Part shown: piece after piece, positions 1 through 10,508 of the stretch
Position numbering within the stretch: position 1 is the stretch's first letter
Layout of the letters: each line of letters starts with the position of its first letter
Origin: Octopus sinensis
Taxonomy: Eukaryota
DNA: 55,470 nt
Assembly: GCF_006345805.1 (NCBI RefSeq)
Contig: NW_021834164.1
Coordinates: forward strand, 1-55,470
Direction: 5' to 3'
Made by a program: the position numbers and the translations under genes
Notes under the pieces: generated by a model
The model's database searches: none
Told to the model about the DNA's origin: nothing
What the model saw: only the letters and a program-made list of their open reading frames with translations

Positions 1-500
1 GGGGACAAAGACCCGTCGGTAAATGATGTTTCATCGGATAATGAAGAGCCAGAAGAGAGTGGAGCAGAATCAGATGACGAAGGATTGTTAGAGGGTGGAG
101 AGGAATCAGAAGAGGACGGAGTCCCGGTGGATGACGCGTCGTCAGAGGACGGTGAAGACGAGTTAGTGGATGGAGAGAAGTCAGTGGATGAAGACGAGTC
201 AGAGGGTGAAGACTCAAATAATGGAGGACTATGGGTGGACGACGACGAGTCAGTGGTGGGAGACGAGTCAGTGGATGAAGGCGAGTCAGCGGATGAAGAC
301 TCAAACGATGGAGGACTATCAGTGGGTGACGACGAGTCAGTGGACGAAGAGGAGTCAGCGGATGAAGCAGATTCCGAGAGTGAAGATGAAGCAGCGACTG
401 AGAGTCTCTTACTGAATAATGGAACGTCGGTTTCTAGCGAAACGCTTGATTCTGGAAACTCAACAACCGAAGGAGAAAGCCTTGCTGTGTCCAGTTCTCG
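1..500 (+). CDS. Exon (5'-truncated by the window) of acidic/EGF-repeat gene; D/E/S-rich low-complexity region
   Basis: Frame open from nt 1 (GDKDPSVNDVSSDNEEPEES...AVSSS); ends at canonical donor CTCG|GTAAGT at 501 in phase 2; two N-glycosylation sequons (NGT, NST). Confidence 0.85.
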
Positions 501-929
501 GTAAGTTAATGCTTCATTCCACCCGGTTTCACATCGCCACTTTCCTCTTCGGGGCTTCTTGTGGTTTTTTACTTTTTTCTTATTAAATAATCGGACCGTG
601 TCTATCTTCGTGTGAATGTTTTAAGTGTTTTAGTGAAAAGAGAGGAGTTGAGCCCGTAGCTCTGTTCAGGGCCCCTGGCATATGTGGGAAGCAATGGGTG
701 AGGTGGGGCTTGGCCCTAACAATTGCAACAGAAGGGACTCAGTGTACCTGAATTACACCAGCATTTGTAGTTTTTATGTCGATCTGTTTTTACTTAGCCC
801 AGTGCATCTCTGTCAGTAGGTAGAAATGAAAACCCATAGCCTGTATATCATAACTGTATTTTTTCAAACAGTCCTCCATAGATCCCTCTTTTTCTTTAAT
901 ATATGATGAGATATTCTTTTCTACTTGAG

Positions 930-1310
930 GCACAAGGCCCGAAATTTGGAGGGAGGGGGCCAGTCGATTATATCGACCCTAGTGCGTAACTGGTACATAT
1001 TTAATCGACTCCGAAAGGAAGAAAGGCAAAGTCGACCTCGGCGTAAATTGAACTCAGAACCTAACGGCAGACGAAATACCTATTTCTTTACTACTCACAA
1101 GGAGCTAAACACAGAGAGGACAAACAAGAACAGACAAAGGGATTAAGTCGATTTTATCGACCCCAGTGTGTAACTGGCACTTAATTTATTGACCGCGAAA
1201 GGATGAAAGGCAAAGTCGACCTCGGCGGAATTTGAACTCTGAACGTAACGGCAGACGAAATACCGCTAAGCATCTCGCCCGGCGTGCTAACGTTTCTGCC
1301 AGCTCGCTTC
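930..1310 (+). mobile_element. Octopus-type SINE family A (two nested partial copies)
   Basis: Core GTCGATT(A/T)(C/T)ATCGACCC..AACTGG..GAAAGGCAAAGTCGACCTCGGCG..TTTGAACTC recurs >15 times in the window (e.g. 2645-2814 -, 5062-5262, 5565-5780, 7808-8002, 9520-9690, 10945-11285, 42940-43140, 46672-46905 -, 51305-51712). Confidence 0.85.
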
Positions 1311-1740
1311 TTTAATACGATGAGATATTGACATACGACTGGGCAGACGATCTCTCCTAAAAGTACTTGACTTGTTTTCCTGATCCTTGCATCAATATAG
1401 GGTCCGCTGTATTTAATCCTGGTTGCTGATTCTATTGGGATGTTCCACCAACTTTCTGGATATATTCTGGTTCTGTTGCGCCAATCTTCAACAAGCCAGA
1501 TTCCTGTAACGGAGCGACGAACCTGAAGGGGCCCAAATAAAACTGTTTCAAATAATAATGATAATTAGTGTGATTTCAAATTTCTGCCACAAGAGCAGCT
1601 TGGGGTGAGGTGAGGGCGAGTCGATTACATAGAGCCTAGTCTGTTATTTTCTCGACGTTGAAAGGAAGAAAGCAAAGTGCACTTTGGGGAATTCGAAATC
1701 AGAACGGAGCGACGGGTCAAATATAGCTTAAACAACCCTT

Positions 1741-2010
1741 ATTCAACATCCTTAAACAACCCTTATTCAGTGAACTTTGGAGTGGGATGGGCTTCTCGAC
1801 CAGAAGAAAATTCTAACTGGTCCCCACCTGCAAGATCATGCGCTATTTATCTTGATATGAGATCACCATGTCCCGCACATATGGTTGTGATGCATGTGCC
1901 TGGGGTACCCTTATCAGACGGGTAGTCATGATGGGTATACTGAGCTTCGTATATTTTACCACGGTGTCACTTTGATGGCATGCACTGCTCTCTCACTCAA
2001 TAATAATAAT
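1741..2010 (+). mobile_element. Retroelement 3'-end repeat family B with (AAT)n tail
   Basis: GGCCCCACCTGCAAGGTCATGTGCTGTTTATCTTGATATGAGATC...CACTGCTCTCTCACTCAATAATAAT also at ~5330-5555, ~6345-6915 and ~10560-10932, with variable 5' truncation and a fixed 3' end. Confidence 0.8.
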
Positions 2011-2069
2011 TTCTTTTTTCGCCACTAAGGGTTTACACAAAAGGGGCTGCTCATTGAAACCCCACAAAA

Positions 2070-7729: not shown

Positions 7730-8065
7730 GTAAGTGAAGCAGAATAGACAACAACAACAACAACAACACACGTTTATGTATAAGTAATAATCTTTTCTAC
7801 TCTAGACAGAAGGCCTGGAATTTTGGTGTGTGGTAAGTCGATTACGTCGACCCCACTACTCACCTGGTACTCAATTTATCGACCCCAAAACGATGGAAGG
7901 CAAAGTCGACCTCTGTGAAATTTGAACTCAGAACGTAGCGACATACGAAATACCGCAAAGATTTCGCCCCGCACGCTAACGACTCTGCCAGCTCGAGACC
8001 TTAATAAAAATAATAATAATAATAATAATAATAATAATAATAATAATAATAATAATAATAATAAC

Positions 8066-9265
8066 TGAGACATGGCTACGGTTGCATAAAGGAAGTTTAA
8101 AATGGGAGAAATTTTTTAGTAGCAGCACGGGATCAAGTTTTAAGGACTAATTGGATAAACACCAAGATATACAAAAACCAATTAGATTCCAAATGTAGCC
8201 TATGCAAATCAAAGGAAGAAGGCATTTCTCATATAGTAATTGAATATAGCATGACGTCACAGAAAGAATTCAAGAAAATATATGACATCTTCGGTAGAGT
8301 AATCCACTGGGATTTGTGTGGACATCTAGGATTTTTAACATGCTGACAAATGGTATGAACACGAACCTGGAAAAGTATTAGAAAGTAAGAAATATAAGAT
8401 GTTGTGGGAGTTCGTCATTCAGACTGACAGTAATAGAAGCTAGAAGGCCTGATTTGGTAGCAGAAGATAAAGAGAATAGAAAGTGCCAGATAACCGACTT
8501 TACGGTCCCAAATGATGAAAACATTAATATGGGAAGTATAGAAAAAAAATGAGGCCCAATGGCCCACTGGTTAGGGCAGCGGACTCGCGGTCATAGGATC
8601 GCGGTTTCGATTCCCAGACCGGGCGTTGTGAGTGTTTATTGAGCGAAAACACCTAAAAAGCTCCACGATGCTCTGGCAGGGGATGGTGGTGATCCCTGCT
8701 GTGCTCTTTCACCACAACTTTCTCTCACTCTTACTTCCTGTTTCTGTTGTACCTGTATTTCAAGGGGCCGGCCTTGTCACTCTCAGTGTCACACTGAATT
8801 TCCCCGAGAACTACGTTAAGGGTGCACGTGTCAGTGGAGTGCTCAGCCACTTACACGTTAATTTCACGAGCAGGCTGTTCCATTGATTCGGATCAACCGG
8901 AACCATCATCGTCGTAACCAACGGAGTGCTTCCATCCATAGAAAAAATAGCAGAGTACCAGGACGTAGCCATTGAATTACCGAAACTATGGAAAGTGCGG
9001 GTAAAATGCGTCCCAGTAGTTATAGGAGCATTGGAAACTATCCCTAAAGGTCTGAACAGATGGAGAGAGGACATAGGCAGAAAACCCAGTTTCGTACAGC
9101 TCCAGAAAACAGTGTTATTATGGACAGCTAAGAAGCTTAGGAGGGATCTTGGCATCTAAGGTTACTTGCTGCAACCCAATAGGTGGGTTCTTGATATTTA
9201 AGGCGGCTTGTAGACCCCTGTTTGGGTCTTTTCTTTTCTAACAGTCTGGCTGGTTGTGTGTATAT
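8066..9265 (+). mobile_element. 5'-truncated R4/Dong-like RLE non-LTR retrotransposon
   Basis: Zinc-knuckle-like DSKCSLCKSKEEGISHIVIE, IHWDLC, KWYEHEP, RRPDLV (PD..D restriction-like endonuclease) and VPVVIGAL motifs; flanked by (TAA)n on both sides; frameshifted. Confidence 0.8.
8551..8937 (+). mobile_element. tRNA-derived SINE inserted into the Dong-like element
   Basis: A-box-like TGGCCCACTGG and B-box-like GGTTTCGATTCC head; flanking direct repeat ATAGAAAAAA(AA)T at 8538-8550 and 8938-8948; LINE coding sequence resumes after it. Confidence 0.8.
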
Positions 9266-9793
9266 GAATAATAATAATAATAATAATAATAATAATATAA
9301 TAATAATAATAATAATAATAATAATAATAATGATAATAATGATGGTGATGATGATGATGATGATGTTGGTGTTGATGATCATAATGATGATAATGATGAT
9401 GATGATGATGTGATGATGATGATGATGATGATGATGATGTTGATGATGATGATGATGTGATGATGATGATGATGATGATGATGATGATGATGATGATGAT
9501 GATGATGATAATGATGATTTCCAAATTGCCACAGAGGGCAAGTAATTCTGGGTCGGGGATAAGTCGATTACATCGACCCCAGTGAACATCTGTTACTTAT
9601 TCAATCGACCCGGAAGCGATGAAAGGCAAAGTTGACGTCTGTGGTGTTTGAACTTAGAAAGAACAGACGCTGTCGAAATGACACCCGGTGTGGTAACTAT
9701 CTGTCATTATGATGATGATCATGATGATGATGATGATGATGAAAGAATTCTGATTGTTATATATAATTGTGTTATTTCTGTTCTGCTTTCCAG

Positions 9794-9913
9794 CCGTCGG
9801 AGGACCGTGCAGATGGAATCGGTGCGGGAGAAATGGTAGATGCGTCAAGAGAGGAACCTCTTTCACTTGTTACTGCAGACGGGGCTATTATTTCAATAGA
9901 AGAACATGTGTTG
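9794..9913 (+). CDS. EGF-like exon, type A (near-identical duplicate of 5899-6018)
   Basis: Same splice context; [40 protein letters not shown]. Confidence 0.9.
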
Positions 9914-10380
9914 GTAAGTAAAGGACAAACAGCAGCTACAAGAACAATATACACACGTATATCTATAAGCAATTGGCTGGGAGATAATAATAATAATAAT
10001 AATAATTAATAATAATAATAATAATAATAATAATAATATAATAATAATAAGAAGAAGAAGAAGAAGAAGAAGAAGAAGAAGAAAAAAGATAATAATAATT
10101 AATTCGCTTATTCGCCACAAGGGCTAACAAAAATCAATTATACCATAAAGGGACAAAACACAGGACTAAAGTTACAAAGTGTTTTTCCGTTTGAAAAATC
10201 CGTGTAAAAAACAGTGTAACAACGAACATATTTAATGTCACAAACTTTTGGGGGAAACGGTCTAGTCGATTACATCGACCCCAGAGTATAACTGGTGCTT
10301 ATTACATTGACCCAACCCCAAATAATGCATTTGTTTTATATACATGCAATTAAGTGCAATAAATTTGTTTTCATTTGCAG

Positions 10381-10508
10381 ATGTAAACGAGTGCAGAAGG
10401 AGGTTTCGATGCGGTAGAAACGGGAGATGCATCAACACAATAGGGTCCTACAAATGTTTGTGTAAACCAGGGTTCCGTTTCAATGGGAGAACATGTGTTC
10501 GTAGATAA
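10381..10508 (+). CDS. Terminal coding exon, cbEGF type B
   Basis: TTTCATTTGCAG| acceptor; [42 protein letters not shown] then TAA at 10506-10508. Confidence 0.88.

Follow-up and report, generated by a model that had tools for sequence, protein, structure and literature searches.

The 55,470-nt stretch of Octopus sinensis DNA analysed here (contig NW_021834164.1 of RefSeq assembly GCF_006345805.1, positions 1 to 55,470 of the forward strand; hereafter the window) carries at positions 1-11762 of the + strand a gene whose product joins an acidic, repetitive linker to a cysteine-rich EMI-like domain and four arginine-rich EGF modules. With high confidence this is an intact octopus gene, of which the window holds the 3' 90%, without about the first 44 codons. 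An earlier reading of the same DNA, the first-pass annotation, had described a charge-bipolar secreted protein at this locus, assembled from six exons and activated by removal of its acidic part.

Gene structure

Exons were reconstructed from AG/GT splice sites, open frames and phase compatibility, together with the proteins of five database relatives (P0001, P0002, P0003, P0005 and P0025, described below) and the annotated gene of P0002. Eight coding exons were recognised in the window, all of compatible phase, with every acceptor formed by a poly-pyrimidine tract and AG and every donor by GT. The partial exon 1 (1..500) encodes the acidic D/E/S-rich linker in 166 codons plus 2 nt; it is open in frame 1, ends at the donor CG/gtaagt and has its 5' part beyond the window edge. 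By tblastn, residues 84-379 of P0005 align from window position 1 onward, and comparison with this protein would place ~44 codons, including the signal peptide, upstream of the window. Exon 2 (4023..4115) encodes the first half of the EMI-like domain, (R)GICRVRCYKTVTYKRARRSWCWFLRRCTKY, between the acceptor tttctttttttccag and the phase-compatible donor CG/gtaaat. Its peptide recurs in P0005, P0001, P0002 and P0025, and a homologous exon lies at 15548-15634 of the O. bimaculoides locus L001 in the annotated P0002 gene, and the two genes have identical exon structures. Exon 3 (4636..4712), with canonical splice sites, encodes the second half of the domain, RTASRRILTTCRRCCRGWTGTPGRCR, the peptide that had rightly been placed between the acidic part and the EGFs.

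Four EGF exons follow, each of 120 nt and phase 1. Exon 4 (5899..6018) encodes EGF1, of the non-calcium-binding type, with 10 Arg and no acidic residue in 40 aa; exon 5 (7610..7729) encodes the calcium-binding EGF (cbEGF) cbEGF2, with 10 Arg and 1 acidic residue in 40 aa and a partial calcium-binding motif; exon 6 (9794..9913) encodes EGF3, a close copy of EGF1 (A to P, R to K) with 9 Arg and no acidic residue; and exon 7 (10381..10500, or to 10508 if unspliced) encodes cbEGF4, with the full cbEGF consensus, 8 Arg and 2 acidic residues. A six-frame cysteine-pattern scan of the whole 55 kb found no EGF exon besides these four. The donor is GTAAGT in three of the four and gtagat in the last, a degenerate site (C/gtagat) mutated relative to G/gtaagt or GTAAGT in homologous exons. 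Left unspliced, exon 7 runs on in frame as CGT AGA TAA and ends ...CVRR at the stop 10506-10508, which had been taken as the gene end; this holds only if the weak donor is unused. When the donor is spliced to the 11-nt terminal mini-exon, exon 8 (11752..11762, GT ATC GGC TAA), the product ends ...CVRIG. Exon 8 and its acceptor are identical in the annotated P0002 gene, the products of P0002 (...CVGIG) and P0025 (...CIGIGTI) carry a ...GIG end as in the spliced window model, and the C-terminus is thus either ...CVRIG by splicing or ...CVRR by read-through, a trivial difference. A 3' untranslated region (UTR) follows at 11763..12004, with AATAAA at 11999-12004, and matches the 3' region of the P0002 gene at 85.6% identity.

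The six-exon model proposed earlier had its splice sites and frame right and missed the exon at 4023-4115 and the 11-nt exon at 11752-11762. It was rejected as the main isoform: a splice from 500 to 4636 is also in frame because exon 2 has the same phase as exon 3, but the peptide of exon 4023-4115 is present in the ortholog and in all paralogs. Some isoform may nevertheless skip this exon, and would stay in frame.

The first-pass annotation was also right that the open reading frame (ORF) track misses the coding frame. Over the EGF exons the ORF list has alternative frames instead, an acidic one at 5872-6387 and another at 7074-7733; the EGF frame alone is open across all four exons. A second frame is fully open in three of them (5899-6018, 7610-7729 and 9794-9913), with net charges of -8 to -9 (for example PSEERADGIGAGEMVDASGEEPLSLVTADGAIISIEEHV), and the corresponding frame of the cbEGF4 exon contains stops. 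Its acidity is a composition effect, arising because Arg AGA/AGG codons shift to GAx, and can mislead an ORF-based reading.

Relatives of the encoded protein

When the EMI-like and EGF part was searched against 5.8 billion protein clusters, the close matches, down to E=1.3e-65, all came from Octopus. The five known relatives comprise paralogs about 50% identical to the window protein, namely P0001 (CAI9741403.1, O. vulgaris, 'fibulin-1-like X1', 51% identity over 99% of the query), P0002 (XP_014783437.1, O. bimaculoides, 'ADGRE2'), P0003 (XP_036369522.1, O. sinensis, 'fibulin-1-like') and P0025 (XP_029651374.2, O. sinensis, 'LTBP2-like'), and the truncated ortholog P0005 (UPI00069532CB in UniParc, probably O. 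bimaculoides), which is 84% identical over the EMI-like part only. The UniParc identifier of P0005 falls near those of O. bimaculoides proteins. A search with the acidic and EMI-like part returned P0005 (68% over 100% of the query, exons 1-3) and P0002 only. In P0005 a signal peptide, MKNLVLFLFVFVVGLWVTEG followed by Q, precedes acidic repeats and the EMI-like domain, after which the model reads through into the intron behind exon 3. This layout identifies P0005 as a truncated ortholog; it supports the junctions between exons 1, 2 and 3 and supplies the missing N-terminus.

Signal peptides of the type MKNLV(L/V)FLFVFVVG(L/V)W(V/L)TEG, followed by Q, are found in P0005, P0001, P0002 and P0025. 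On the strength of these relatives the window protein is very probably secreted, as had been proposed. The family plan consists of a signal peptide, an acidic Ser/Thr-rich linker ending in G-N-S-T, an EMI-like domain and two to six cbEGFs. P0003 and P0025 lie on one chromosome-scale contig of O. sinensis, ~110 kb apart. The P0003 model appears to be N-terminally truncated, with an EMI-like exon and a further cbEGF exon upstream (7522-7778 and 9902-10018 of the O. sinensis locus L002), and the fuller O. vulgaris model P0001 agrees with these upstream exons. As judged from sequence comparison, these proteins form a small, Octopus-restricted paralog family of secreted acidic linker/EMI-like/cbEGF proteins.

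The names given by automatic pipelines are misleading for this lineage-restricted family: no fibulin-type, anaphylatoxin, TB or 7TM/GAIN domain, as would mark fibulin-1, LTBP or ADGRE2, is present, and the precomputed Pfam lists of the paralogs hold EGF-class families only. The loci L001 (O. bimaculoides), L002 and L003 (both O. sinensis) match the window only as paralogs or repeats, with 77-87% identity between non-repeat window DNA and L001. No database protein contains the four basic EGFs, and the full-length product is apparently unannotated; the gene seems to be lacking or truncated in current Octopus annotations. The literature searched contained nothing on EMI domains or fibulin-1-like proteins of octopus, or on arginine-rich EGF proteins of cephalopods. 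The first-pass annotation had named as a refuting result close orthologs that prove to be ordinary, non-basic EMI-EGF matrix proteins. The relatives are indeed EMI-like/EGF proteins, yet they are basic, with net charges of +8 to +24.

The cysteine-rich domain and the acidic/basic boundary

Exons 2 and 3 together encode a cysteine-rich domain of 53 aa with 8 Cys and a net charge of +17. With exon 2 included, the segment RTASRR...CCRGWTGTPGRCR is therefore the second half of one 53-residue, 8-Cys domain. Its pattern, C..C-[ST]-K-Y-R...CCxGWxGxPGxC directly before the EGFs, resembles by eye a short EMI domain. EMI domains are single, N-terminal protein-interaction modules with a role in multimerisation (PMC11990869). 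In all five of five family members the domain is present in single copy, N-terminal to the other modules, with the CCxG(W/Y)...G..C motif. An hhalign comparison with 8 EGFL7/8 EMI domains covered the C-terminal 35 columns only, at 49% identity (P=2.3e-4, probability 44%), and the Pfam EMI model (PF07546, cut-off 25 bits) gave no match to the window protein at E<=1. An AlphaFold2 model of the domain shows a long beta-hairpin of two 20-residue antiparallel strands, with a predicted local distance difference test (pLDDT) score of 81. Foldseek found no PDB match with E<1 for the EMI-like model alone; a recent review notes that EMI domains lack a crystal structure (PMC11990869). The whole model matched cbEGF arrays only, and a PDB sequence search with the EMI-like profile gave no match. 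A hidden Markov model (HMM) search with the domain against 1.84 billion representatives retrieved four proteins, all of this family (the three query sequences and P0025). Given these mixed formal tests, the domain is named EMI-like.

The extent of this domain changes the picture of processing. The dibasic RR that had been placed at the acidic/basic junction lies between Cys4 and Cys5 of the 8-Cys domain, and the proposed SRR processing site falls inside the EMI-like domain, where its counterpart in the EMI domain of EGFL7 is the conserved YRTxYR(R) stretch; neither proposal survives. The true boundary in the window gene is ...AVSSSR/GIC, with a single Arg. At the same place P0005 has RRSR, while P0001 and P0025 share KR; P0002 is devoid of a basic site there. 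Cleavage at the SSSR/G boundary is possible and is not indicated for the window gene.

These boundaries bear directly on the idea of a pro-protein that loses its acidic part through cleavage at a dibasic site and so yields a cationic EGF antimicrobial peptide or toxin. The layout of an acidic N-terminal block before a Cys-stabilised polycation near charge balance fits such a precursor, for which proMBP-1 provides a precedent (PMC11483036). Fast evolution, as for immune and venom genes, and the RRSR (P0005) or KR (P0001, P0025) directly before the first EMI-like Cys point the same way. However, SRR lies within the 8-Cys domain, the true boundary offers only SSSR/G and P0002 has no basic site at all, and dibasic pairs are expected by chance in such K/R-rich sequences. 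Furthermore, Pfam, protein-cluster and HMM searches revealed no similarity to known antimicrobial or toxin families, and the freed part, at ~26 kDa, would be far above typical antimicrobial peptides. A precursor of this kind is therefore considered unlikely.

EGF modules and charge distribution

Assignment to the EGF class was based on six Cys with the C1-C3, C2-C4 and C5-C6 spacing and on the Pfam gathering thresholds. The Cys-pattern scan gave four matches, solely in the EGF frame, and the Pfam scores were 58.9 bits for EGF_3 (cut-off 28.5; E=5.8e-16), 53.4 for cEGF (26.6) and 42.2 for EGF (21.5), with four stretches each. Only EGF-class Pfam families match the window protein. The calcium-binding type (PF07645) was recognised by D/N-x-D/N-E/Q-x-C and C-x-D/N-x4-F/Y-x-C; EGF_CA scored 51.2 bits (cut-off 27; E=1.5e-13) in two stretches, and only the second and fourth EGFs belong to this type, EGF1 and EGF3 (AVGGxC) failing the motif. 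The motif is complete in cbEGF4 (DVNEC), whereas cbEGF2 (YRNEC...CINTPGSYRC) lacks the first Asp and has Tyr in its place through the split codon T/AC. The array thus has the order (EGF-cbEGF)x2, with a net charge of +40 and 24% Arg, followed by a C-terminus of 2-3 residues. All 32 of 32 cysteines are kept, and no RGD or KGD integrin motif is present in the protein. The non-calcium-binding type with AVGGxCRWNRC (EGF1, EGF3) is derived and was found in no other locus compared.

EGF and cbEGF modules are very common extracellular units and were near-neutral in the sample examined, which comprised 62 EGFs from 19 non-octopus homologs and is biased, if at all, toward basic domains. Their C1-C6 cores had a mean net charge of 0 (standard deviation 2.7) and a maximum of +6, as against +10 for each core of the window gene, bearing out the earlier statement that these EGFs are unusually basic. 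The accompanying description of four hyper-cationic modules with 9-10 Arg and 0-2 acidic residues each is accurate as to charge and acidic residues (0, 1, 0 and 2); the Arg counts are 10, 10, 9 and 8. The acidic residues are confined to Ca2+-ligand positions (NEC or DVNEC). Basicity as such is a family trait: the paralog proteins have net charges of +8 to +24, and their individual EGFs range from +3 to +10. What distinguishes the window gene is the acidic expansion neutralising the whole protein, also seen in P0005, together with uniformly maximal, Arg-dominated EGFs.

For the window-encoded part, the net charge is -63 in the linker, +17 in the EMI-like domain and +40 in the EGFs, -6 in total. 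The acidic and basic blocks are nearly balanced (-63 vs +57) and differ widely in isoelectric point (pI <=4.05 vs 11.0), so that the charge-bipolar layout described earlier stands. The basic part consists of 24% Arg, 15% Cys and 6.4% Tyr. By its sequence, the mature protein would be a nearly neutral block polyampholyte.

Such a charge pattern, with a total of about -6, would also suit a structural or adhesive secretion (egg-case or egg-tether cement, sucker or skin) working through self-coacervation, in which acidic and basic blocks of different molecules would pair, and through a disulfide-stiffened EGF array. Tandem EGF arrays recur in marine holdfast proteins, including mfp-2 and octovafibrin (PMC12817120, PMC10336842), the 6.4% Tyr of the basic part represents potential 3,4-dihydroxyphenylalanine (DOPA), and an EMI-like domain would give multimerisation. 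On the other hand, the window protein is unrelated to octovafibrin, which has a C-type lectin (CTL)-29 EGF-CTL architecture without EMI (PMC10336842) and is not among the homologs; four EGFs make a short rod, and egg threads gave one major protein (PMC10336842). A structural or adhesive role is accordingly regarded as doubtful.

The acidic linker

The acidic D/E/S-rich region was confirmed: exon 1 is open, and its 166 complete codons comprise 66 D/E, 30 S, 2 K and 0 R. The linker, at least 167-169 aa long in the window, consists of D/E/S-rich tandem repeats with a net charge of -63 and ends in a conserved N-glycosylation sequon (G-N-S-T). Within exon 1, an in-frame tandem repeat at 157..386 (+ strand) is built of 2.6 copies of an 87-nt (29-aa) unit, itself derived from 18-nt subunits (about DESVDE); the call was made by Tandem Repeats Finder with 81% matches and a score of 306. 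The linker of P0005 is longer (240 aa, net -82), repeat length differing between the ortholog and the window gene, and among family members a long acidic minisatellite is confined to these two. The linker of the window gene was thus probably enlarged by repeat expansion.

A D/E/S-rich repeat could also bind calcium or mineral, with the cbEGFs anchoring the protein to a matrix, as in a biomineral- or Ca2+-associated protein of the statolith or stylet. Asp/Glu/Ser-rich repetitive blocks are described as typical of mollusc matrix proteins, and as fast-evolving (PMC9290575), and two cbEGFs are present. Nevertheless, S-x-E kinase motifs account for only 3 of the 30 Ser, an extreme polycationic block is unusual in matrix proteins, and the acidic block is missing from the paralogs, making this role very unlikely.

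Gene history and evolutionary rate

Relative to the P0002 gene, the coding exons are 74.7% identical, the adjoining introns 77-84% and the 3' UTR 85.6%. The Nei-Gojobori ratio of nonsynonymous to synonymous divergence (dN/dS), obtained from 132 codons in one pairwise comparison, comes to 0.77 over all of them; for the EMI-like exons it is 1.0-1.5, even though about a quarter of positions are invariant Cys or Gly. Values for EGF-exon pairs range from 0.33 to 1.09. Charge-changing differences run toward the window gene (+23 vs -3). Within this small sample, the values fit a secreted protein in rapid diversification and are unlike those of a conserved matrix regulator.

Intron homology to the two-EGF paralog gene of L001 flanks exons 2-3, cbEGF2, cbEGF4 and the terminal exon, and the EGF array was therefore extended in the window gene, probably by exon duplication. 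Over 220 nt, the cbEGF2 exon with its flanks shows 80% identity to the P0002 gene around its first EGF exon. Furthermore, two near-identical tracts on the + strand, copy A (5826..6111) and copy B (9721-10006), differ at 4 sites in 286 bp, 3 of them amino-acid-changing. Copy A comprises the EGF1 exon with ~70 nt and 90 nt of flanking intron; both copies are bounded by GAT and AAT microsatellites, and their outer flanks differ. This indicates a recent duplication or gene conversion behind EGF1 and EGF3, an assembly artefact being less likely.

Trinucleotide microsatellites are frequent in the introns, with (ATG/GAT)n of up to 491 bp and (AAT)n of up to 259 bp (5279-5323, 5801-5847, 6089-6347, 6858-6920, 7074-7564, 8002-8064, 9267-9518 and 9984-10083). 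Those directly flanking EGF exons may promote exon duplication or gene conversion.

The same evidence bears on the most sceptical account, in which the gene encodes an ordinary EGFL7- or fibulin-like matrix regulator with meaningless charge, or is decaying or mis-assembled. The domain order (EMI-like, EGF, cbEGF) is that of EGFL7, the NCBI names of the paralogs are fibulin-1-like and LTBP2-like, the last donor is degenerate, and the near-identity of EGF1 and EGF3 could reflect an assembly duplication. However, the EMI-like profile retrieves neither EGFL7 nor fibulin or LTBP, no coiled-coil, fibulin-type or TB module is present, and the last EGF is followed by 2-3 residues before the stop. Fast evolution is also unlike that of conserved extracellular matrix regulators, all frames are open with every Cys kept, and the tract copies can be told apart by 4 sites and by their flanks. 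This account is held to be the least probable of those considered.

Surrounding DNA

The window begins with 12 kb of eukaryotic DNA in which copies of short interspersed elements (SINEs) and trinucleotide microsatellites abound. A SINE-like repeat with the core GTCGATTACATCGACCCCAGTG...GGCAAAGTCGACCTCGGCG occurs in many copies and both orientations (~898-1317, 2643-2818, 5100-5260, 7788-8007, 9560-9668, 10981-11347 and many more). The loci from O. bimaculoides and O. sinensis likewise contain this repeat in abundance, at 75-92% identity. In intron 5, a tRNA-like repeat (GGCCCAATGGCCCACTGGTTAGGGCAGCGGACTCGCGGTCATAGGATCGCGGTTTCGATTCCCAGACCGGGCG...) at 8537-8929 is 87.6% identical over 394 nt to a copy in L001 and interrupts retroelement-looking ORF fragments at 8080-9160. 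An ARAGORN scan of this tRNA-like SINE called no tRNA, and Pfam gave no matches to the retroelement-like intron ORFs. Farther along, 22265-24911 is occupied by GC-rich (49%) tandem satellites with 39-nt and 63/125-nt units, followed by 578 bp of (AT)n; repeats related to them at 88-93% identity occur in L003 of O. sinensis.

A second gene, with ankyrin repeats (Pfam Ank_4, 3.6e-9), lies at 49670-54496 on the + strand, with exons at ~52343-52555 and 54197-54349. These exons are collinear with an Ank/RING (zf-C3HC4_3) gene upstream of P0002 in O. bimaculoides (L001 538-3877), and the ankyrin region (49.7-54.5 kb) is 80-87% identical to L001 at the nucleotide level and ~68% at the amino-acid level. 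L001 may be an orthologous or a paralogous locus, and with so low an amino-acid identity this neighbour was not used as a neutral yardstick between species. The arrangement suggests either a P0002-type paralog just past the 3' edge of the window or a duplication of the entire two-gene block.

Proposed mechanism and significance

Altogether, the observations are best accommodated, with a probability of roughly 45% for the account as a whole, by an intact gene of an Octopus-restricted family whose product is a charge-balanced polyanion binder. The mechanism is proposed tentatively, at somewhat less than even odds. The Arg-rich EGF rod, stiffened by disulfides and Ca2+, would offer a polyanion-binding surface, with sulfated or carboxylated glycans and mucins, or microbial envelopes, as candidate ligands. 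The acidic tail would serve as a built-in counter-ion that keeps the polycation soluble and inert during secretion. Activity might then be released when the tail is displaced by stronger polyanions or Ca2+, or when it is cut off by a protease at the ...SSSR/G boundary; alternatively, the tail could engage adjacent molecules in trans through their basic blocks, leading to assembly. The EMI-like domain would act as a multimerisation module.

A bolder version, considered improbable, holds that the protein is a self-neutralised polycationic EGF rod, an effector kind not yet described, and that the co-expanded acidic minisatellite is a selected counter-ion controlling the time and place of the polycation's action. 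Herein, the Arg-rich EMI-like/EGF block would be the active polyanion binder, on microbial envelopes or in material assembly, and the directional Arg gain and the change of repeat length between species would represent adaptive tuning of a charge switch.

Several points weigh against the charge-balanced polyanion binder. The paralogs are polycationic without a comparable acidic tail, their linkers carrying only -5 to -9, and masking is therefore not a general need of the family. The acidic expansion could instead be neutral minisatellite growth, and neither a dibasic nor a furin site is present where the linker of the window gene meets the domain. Splice sites, frames and paralogs are the grounds on which the EGF exons are assigned to the mRNA, and the sole ortholog model, P0005, ends by intron read-through after the EMI-like domain. 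In addition, the family misses the Pfam EMI threshold, with P0005 scoring best at 10.3 bits (E=1.3), and the dN/dS values come from the single small comparison described above.

If the function is confirmed, the protein would represent a natural, genetically encoded block polyampholyte. Four +10 modules with 12 disulfides and a -63 tail show the extent of charge that the EGF fold tolerates. If correct, the account would be relevant to cephalopod innate immunity or secreted biomaterials, and to the design of protein-based coacervates.

Comparison with known systems

The paralog family shares with the window gene the signal peptide, the linker ending in GNST, the 8-Cys domain with CCxGWxGxPGxC and the 120-nt phase-1 cbEGF exons. 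It differs in being ~50% identical and net positive, and +10 in every EGF is known only from the window gene.

Beyond Octopus, Nimrod, Draper, CED-1 and MEGF10 proteins carry an N-terminal CCxG(W/Y) module followed by EGF-type repeats, and some Nimrod-type members (NimB) are secreted and microbe-binding. The window repeats are, by contrast, classical EGF/cbEGF and not NIM or laminin-type, and protein-cluster and HMM searches retrieved no protein of this group. EGFL7 and EGFL8 resemble the window protein in the order of a small N-terminal EMI or EMI-like domain, EGF and cbEGF, and in the Arg-richness of the EMI region. The EMI domain of EGFL7 aligns in its C-terminal half with the window domain through C-x5-C-[ST]-x-Y-R...CCxGW...G.C, whereas the window domain is ~20 residues shorter and has two extra Cys. 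EGFL7 lacks an acidic tail and has a C-terminal coiled-coil, and the window protein shows the reverse. Orthology was not borne out, since the family profile retrieves no EGFL7 and an EGFL7 query retrieves no octopus proteins.

Mussel mfp-2 and octovafibrin, the latter from octopus, are likewise secreted proteins with tandem EGFs (PMC10336842, PMC12817120). Octovafibrin consists of 29 non-Ca EGFs flanked by C-type lectins (PMC10336842), an architecture unlike that of the window protein. The EGF repeats of mfp-2 bear DOPA. As described, EMI-like domains and polyacidic tails are absent from both proteins, neither was among the homologs found, and kinship to the window protein lies in the EGF fold only; the likeness to mfp-2 raised by the first-pass annotation is thus one of analogy.

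Prodefensins are among the charge-neutralised cationic precursors, and a further one is proMBP-1 (PRG2). In proMBP-1, an acidic propiece, believed to be neutralising in transport, precedes a basic folded domain with a pI of 11.4 and a charge of +15 (PMC11483036). As in that protein, the acidic N-terminal segment of the window product roughly balances a cationic, Cys-stabilised domain: in both, an acidic segment is followed by a disulfide-bonded, Arg-rich domain with a pI of about 11, and the charge is roughly cancelled (PMC11483036). The two differ in that proMBP-1 has a C-type lectin fold and cleavage and toxicity are demonstrated for MBP, while the charges of the window protein are ~4x larger.

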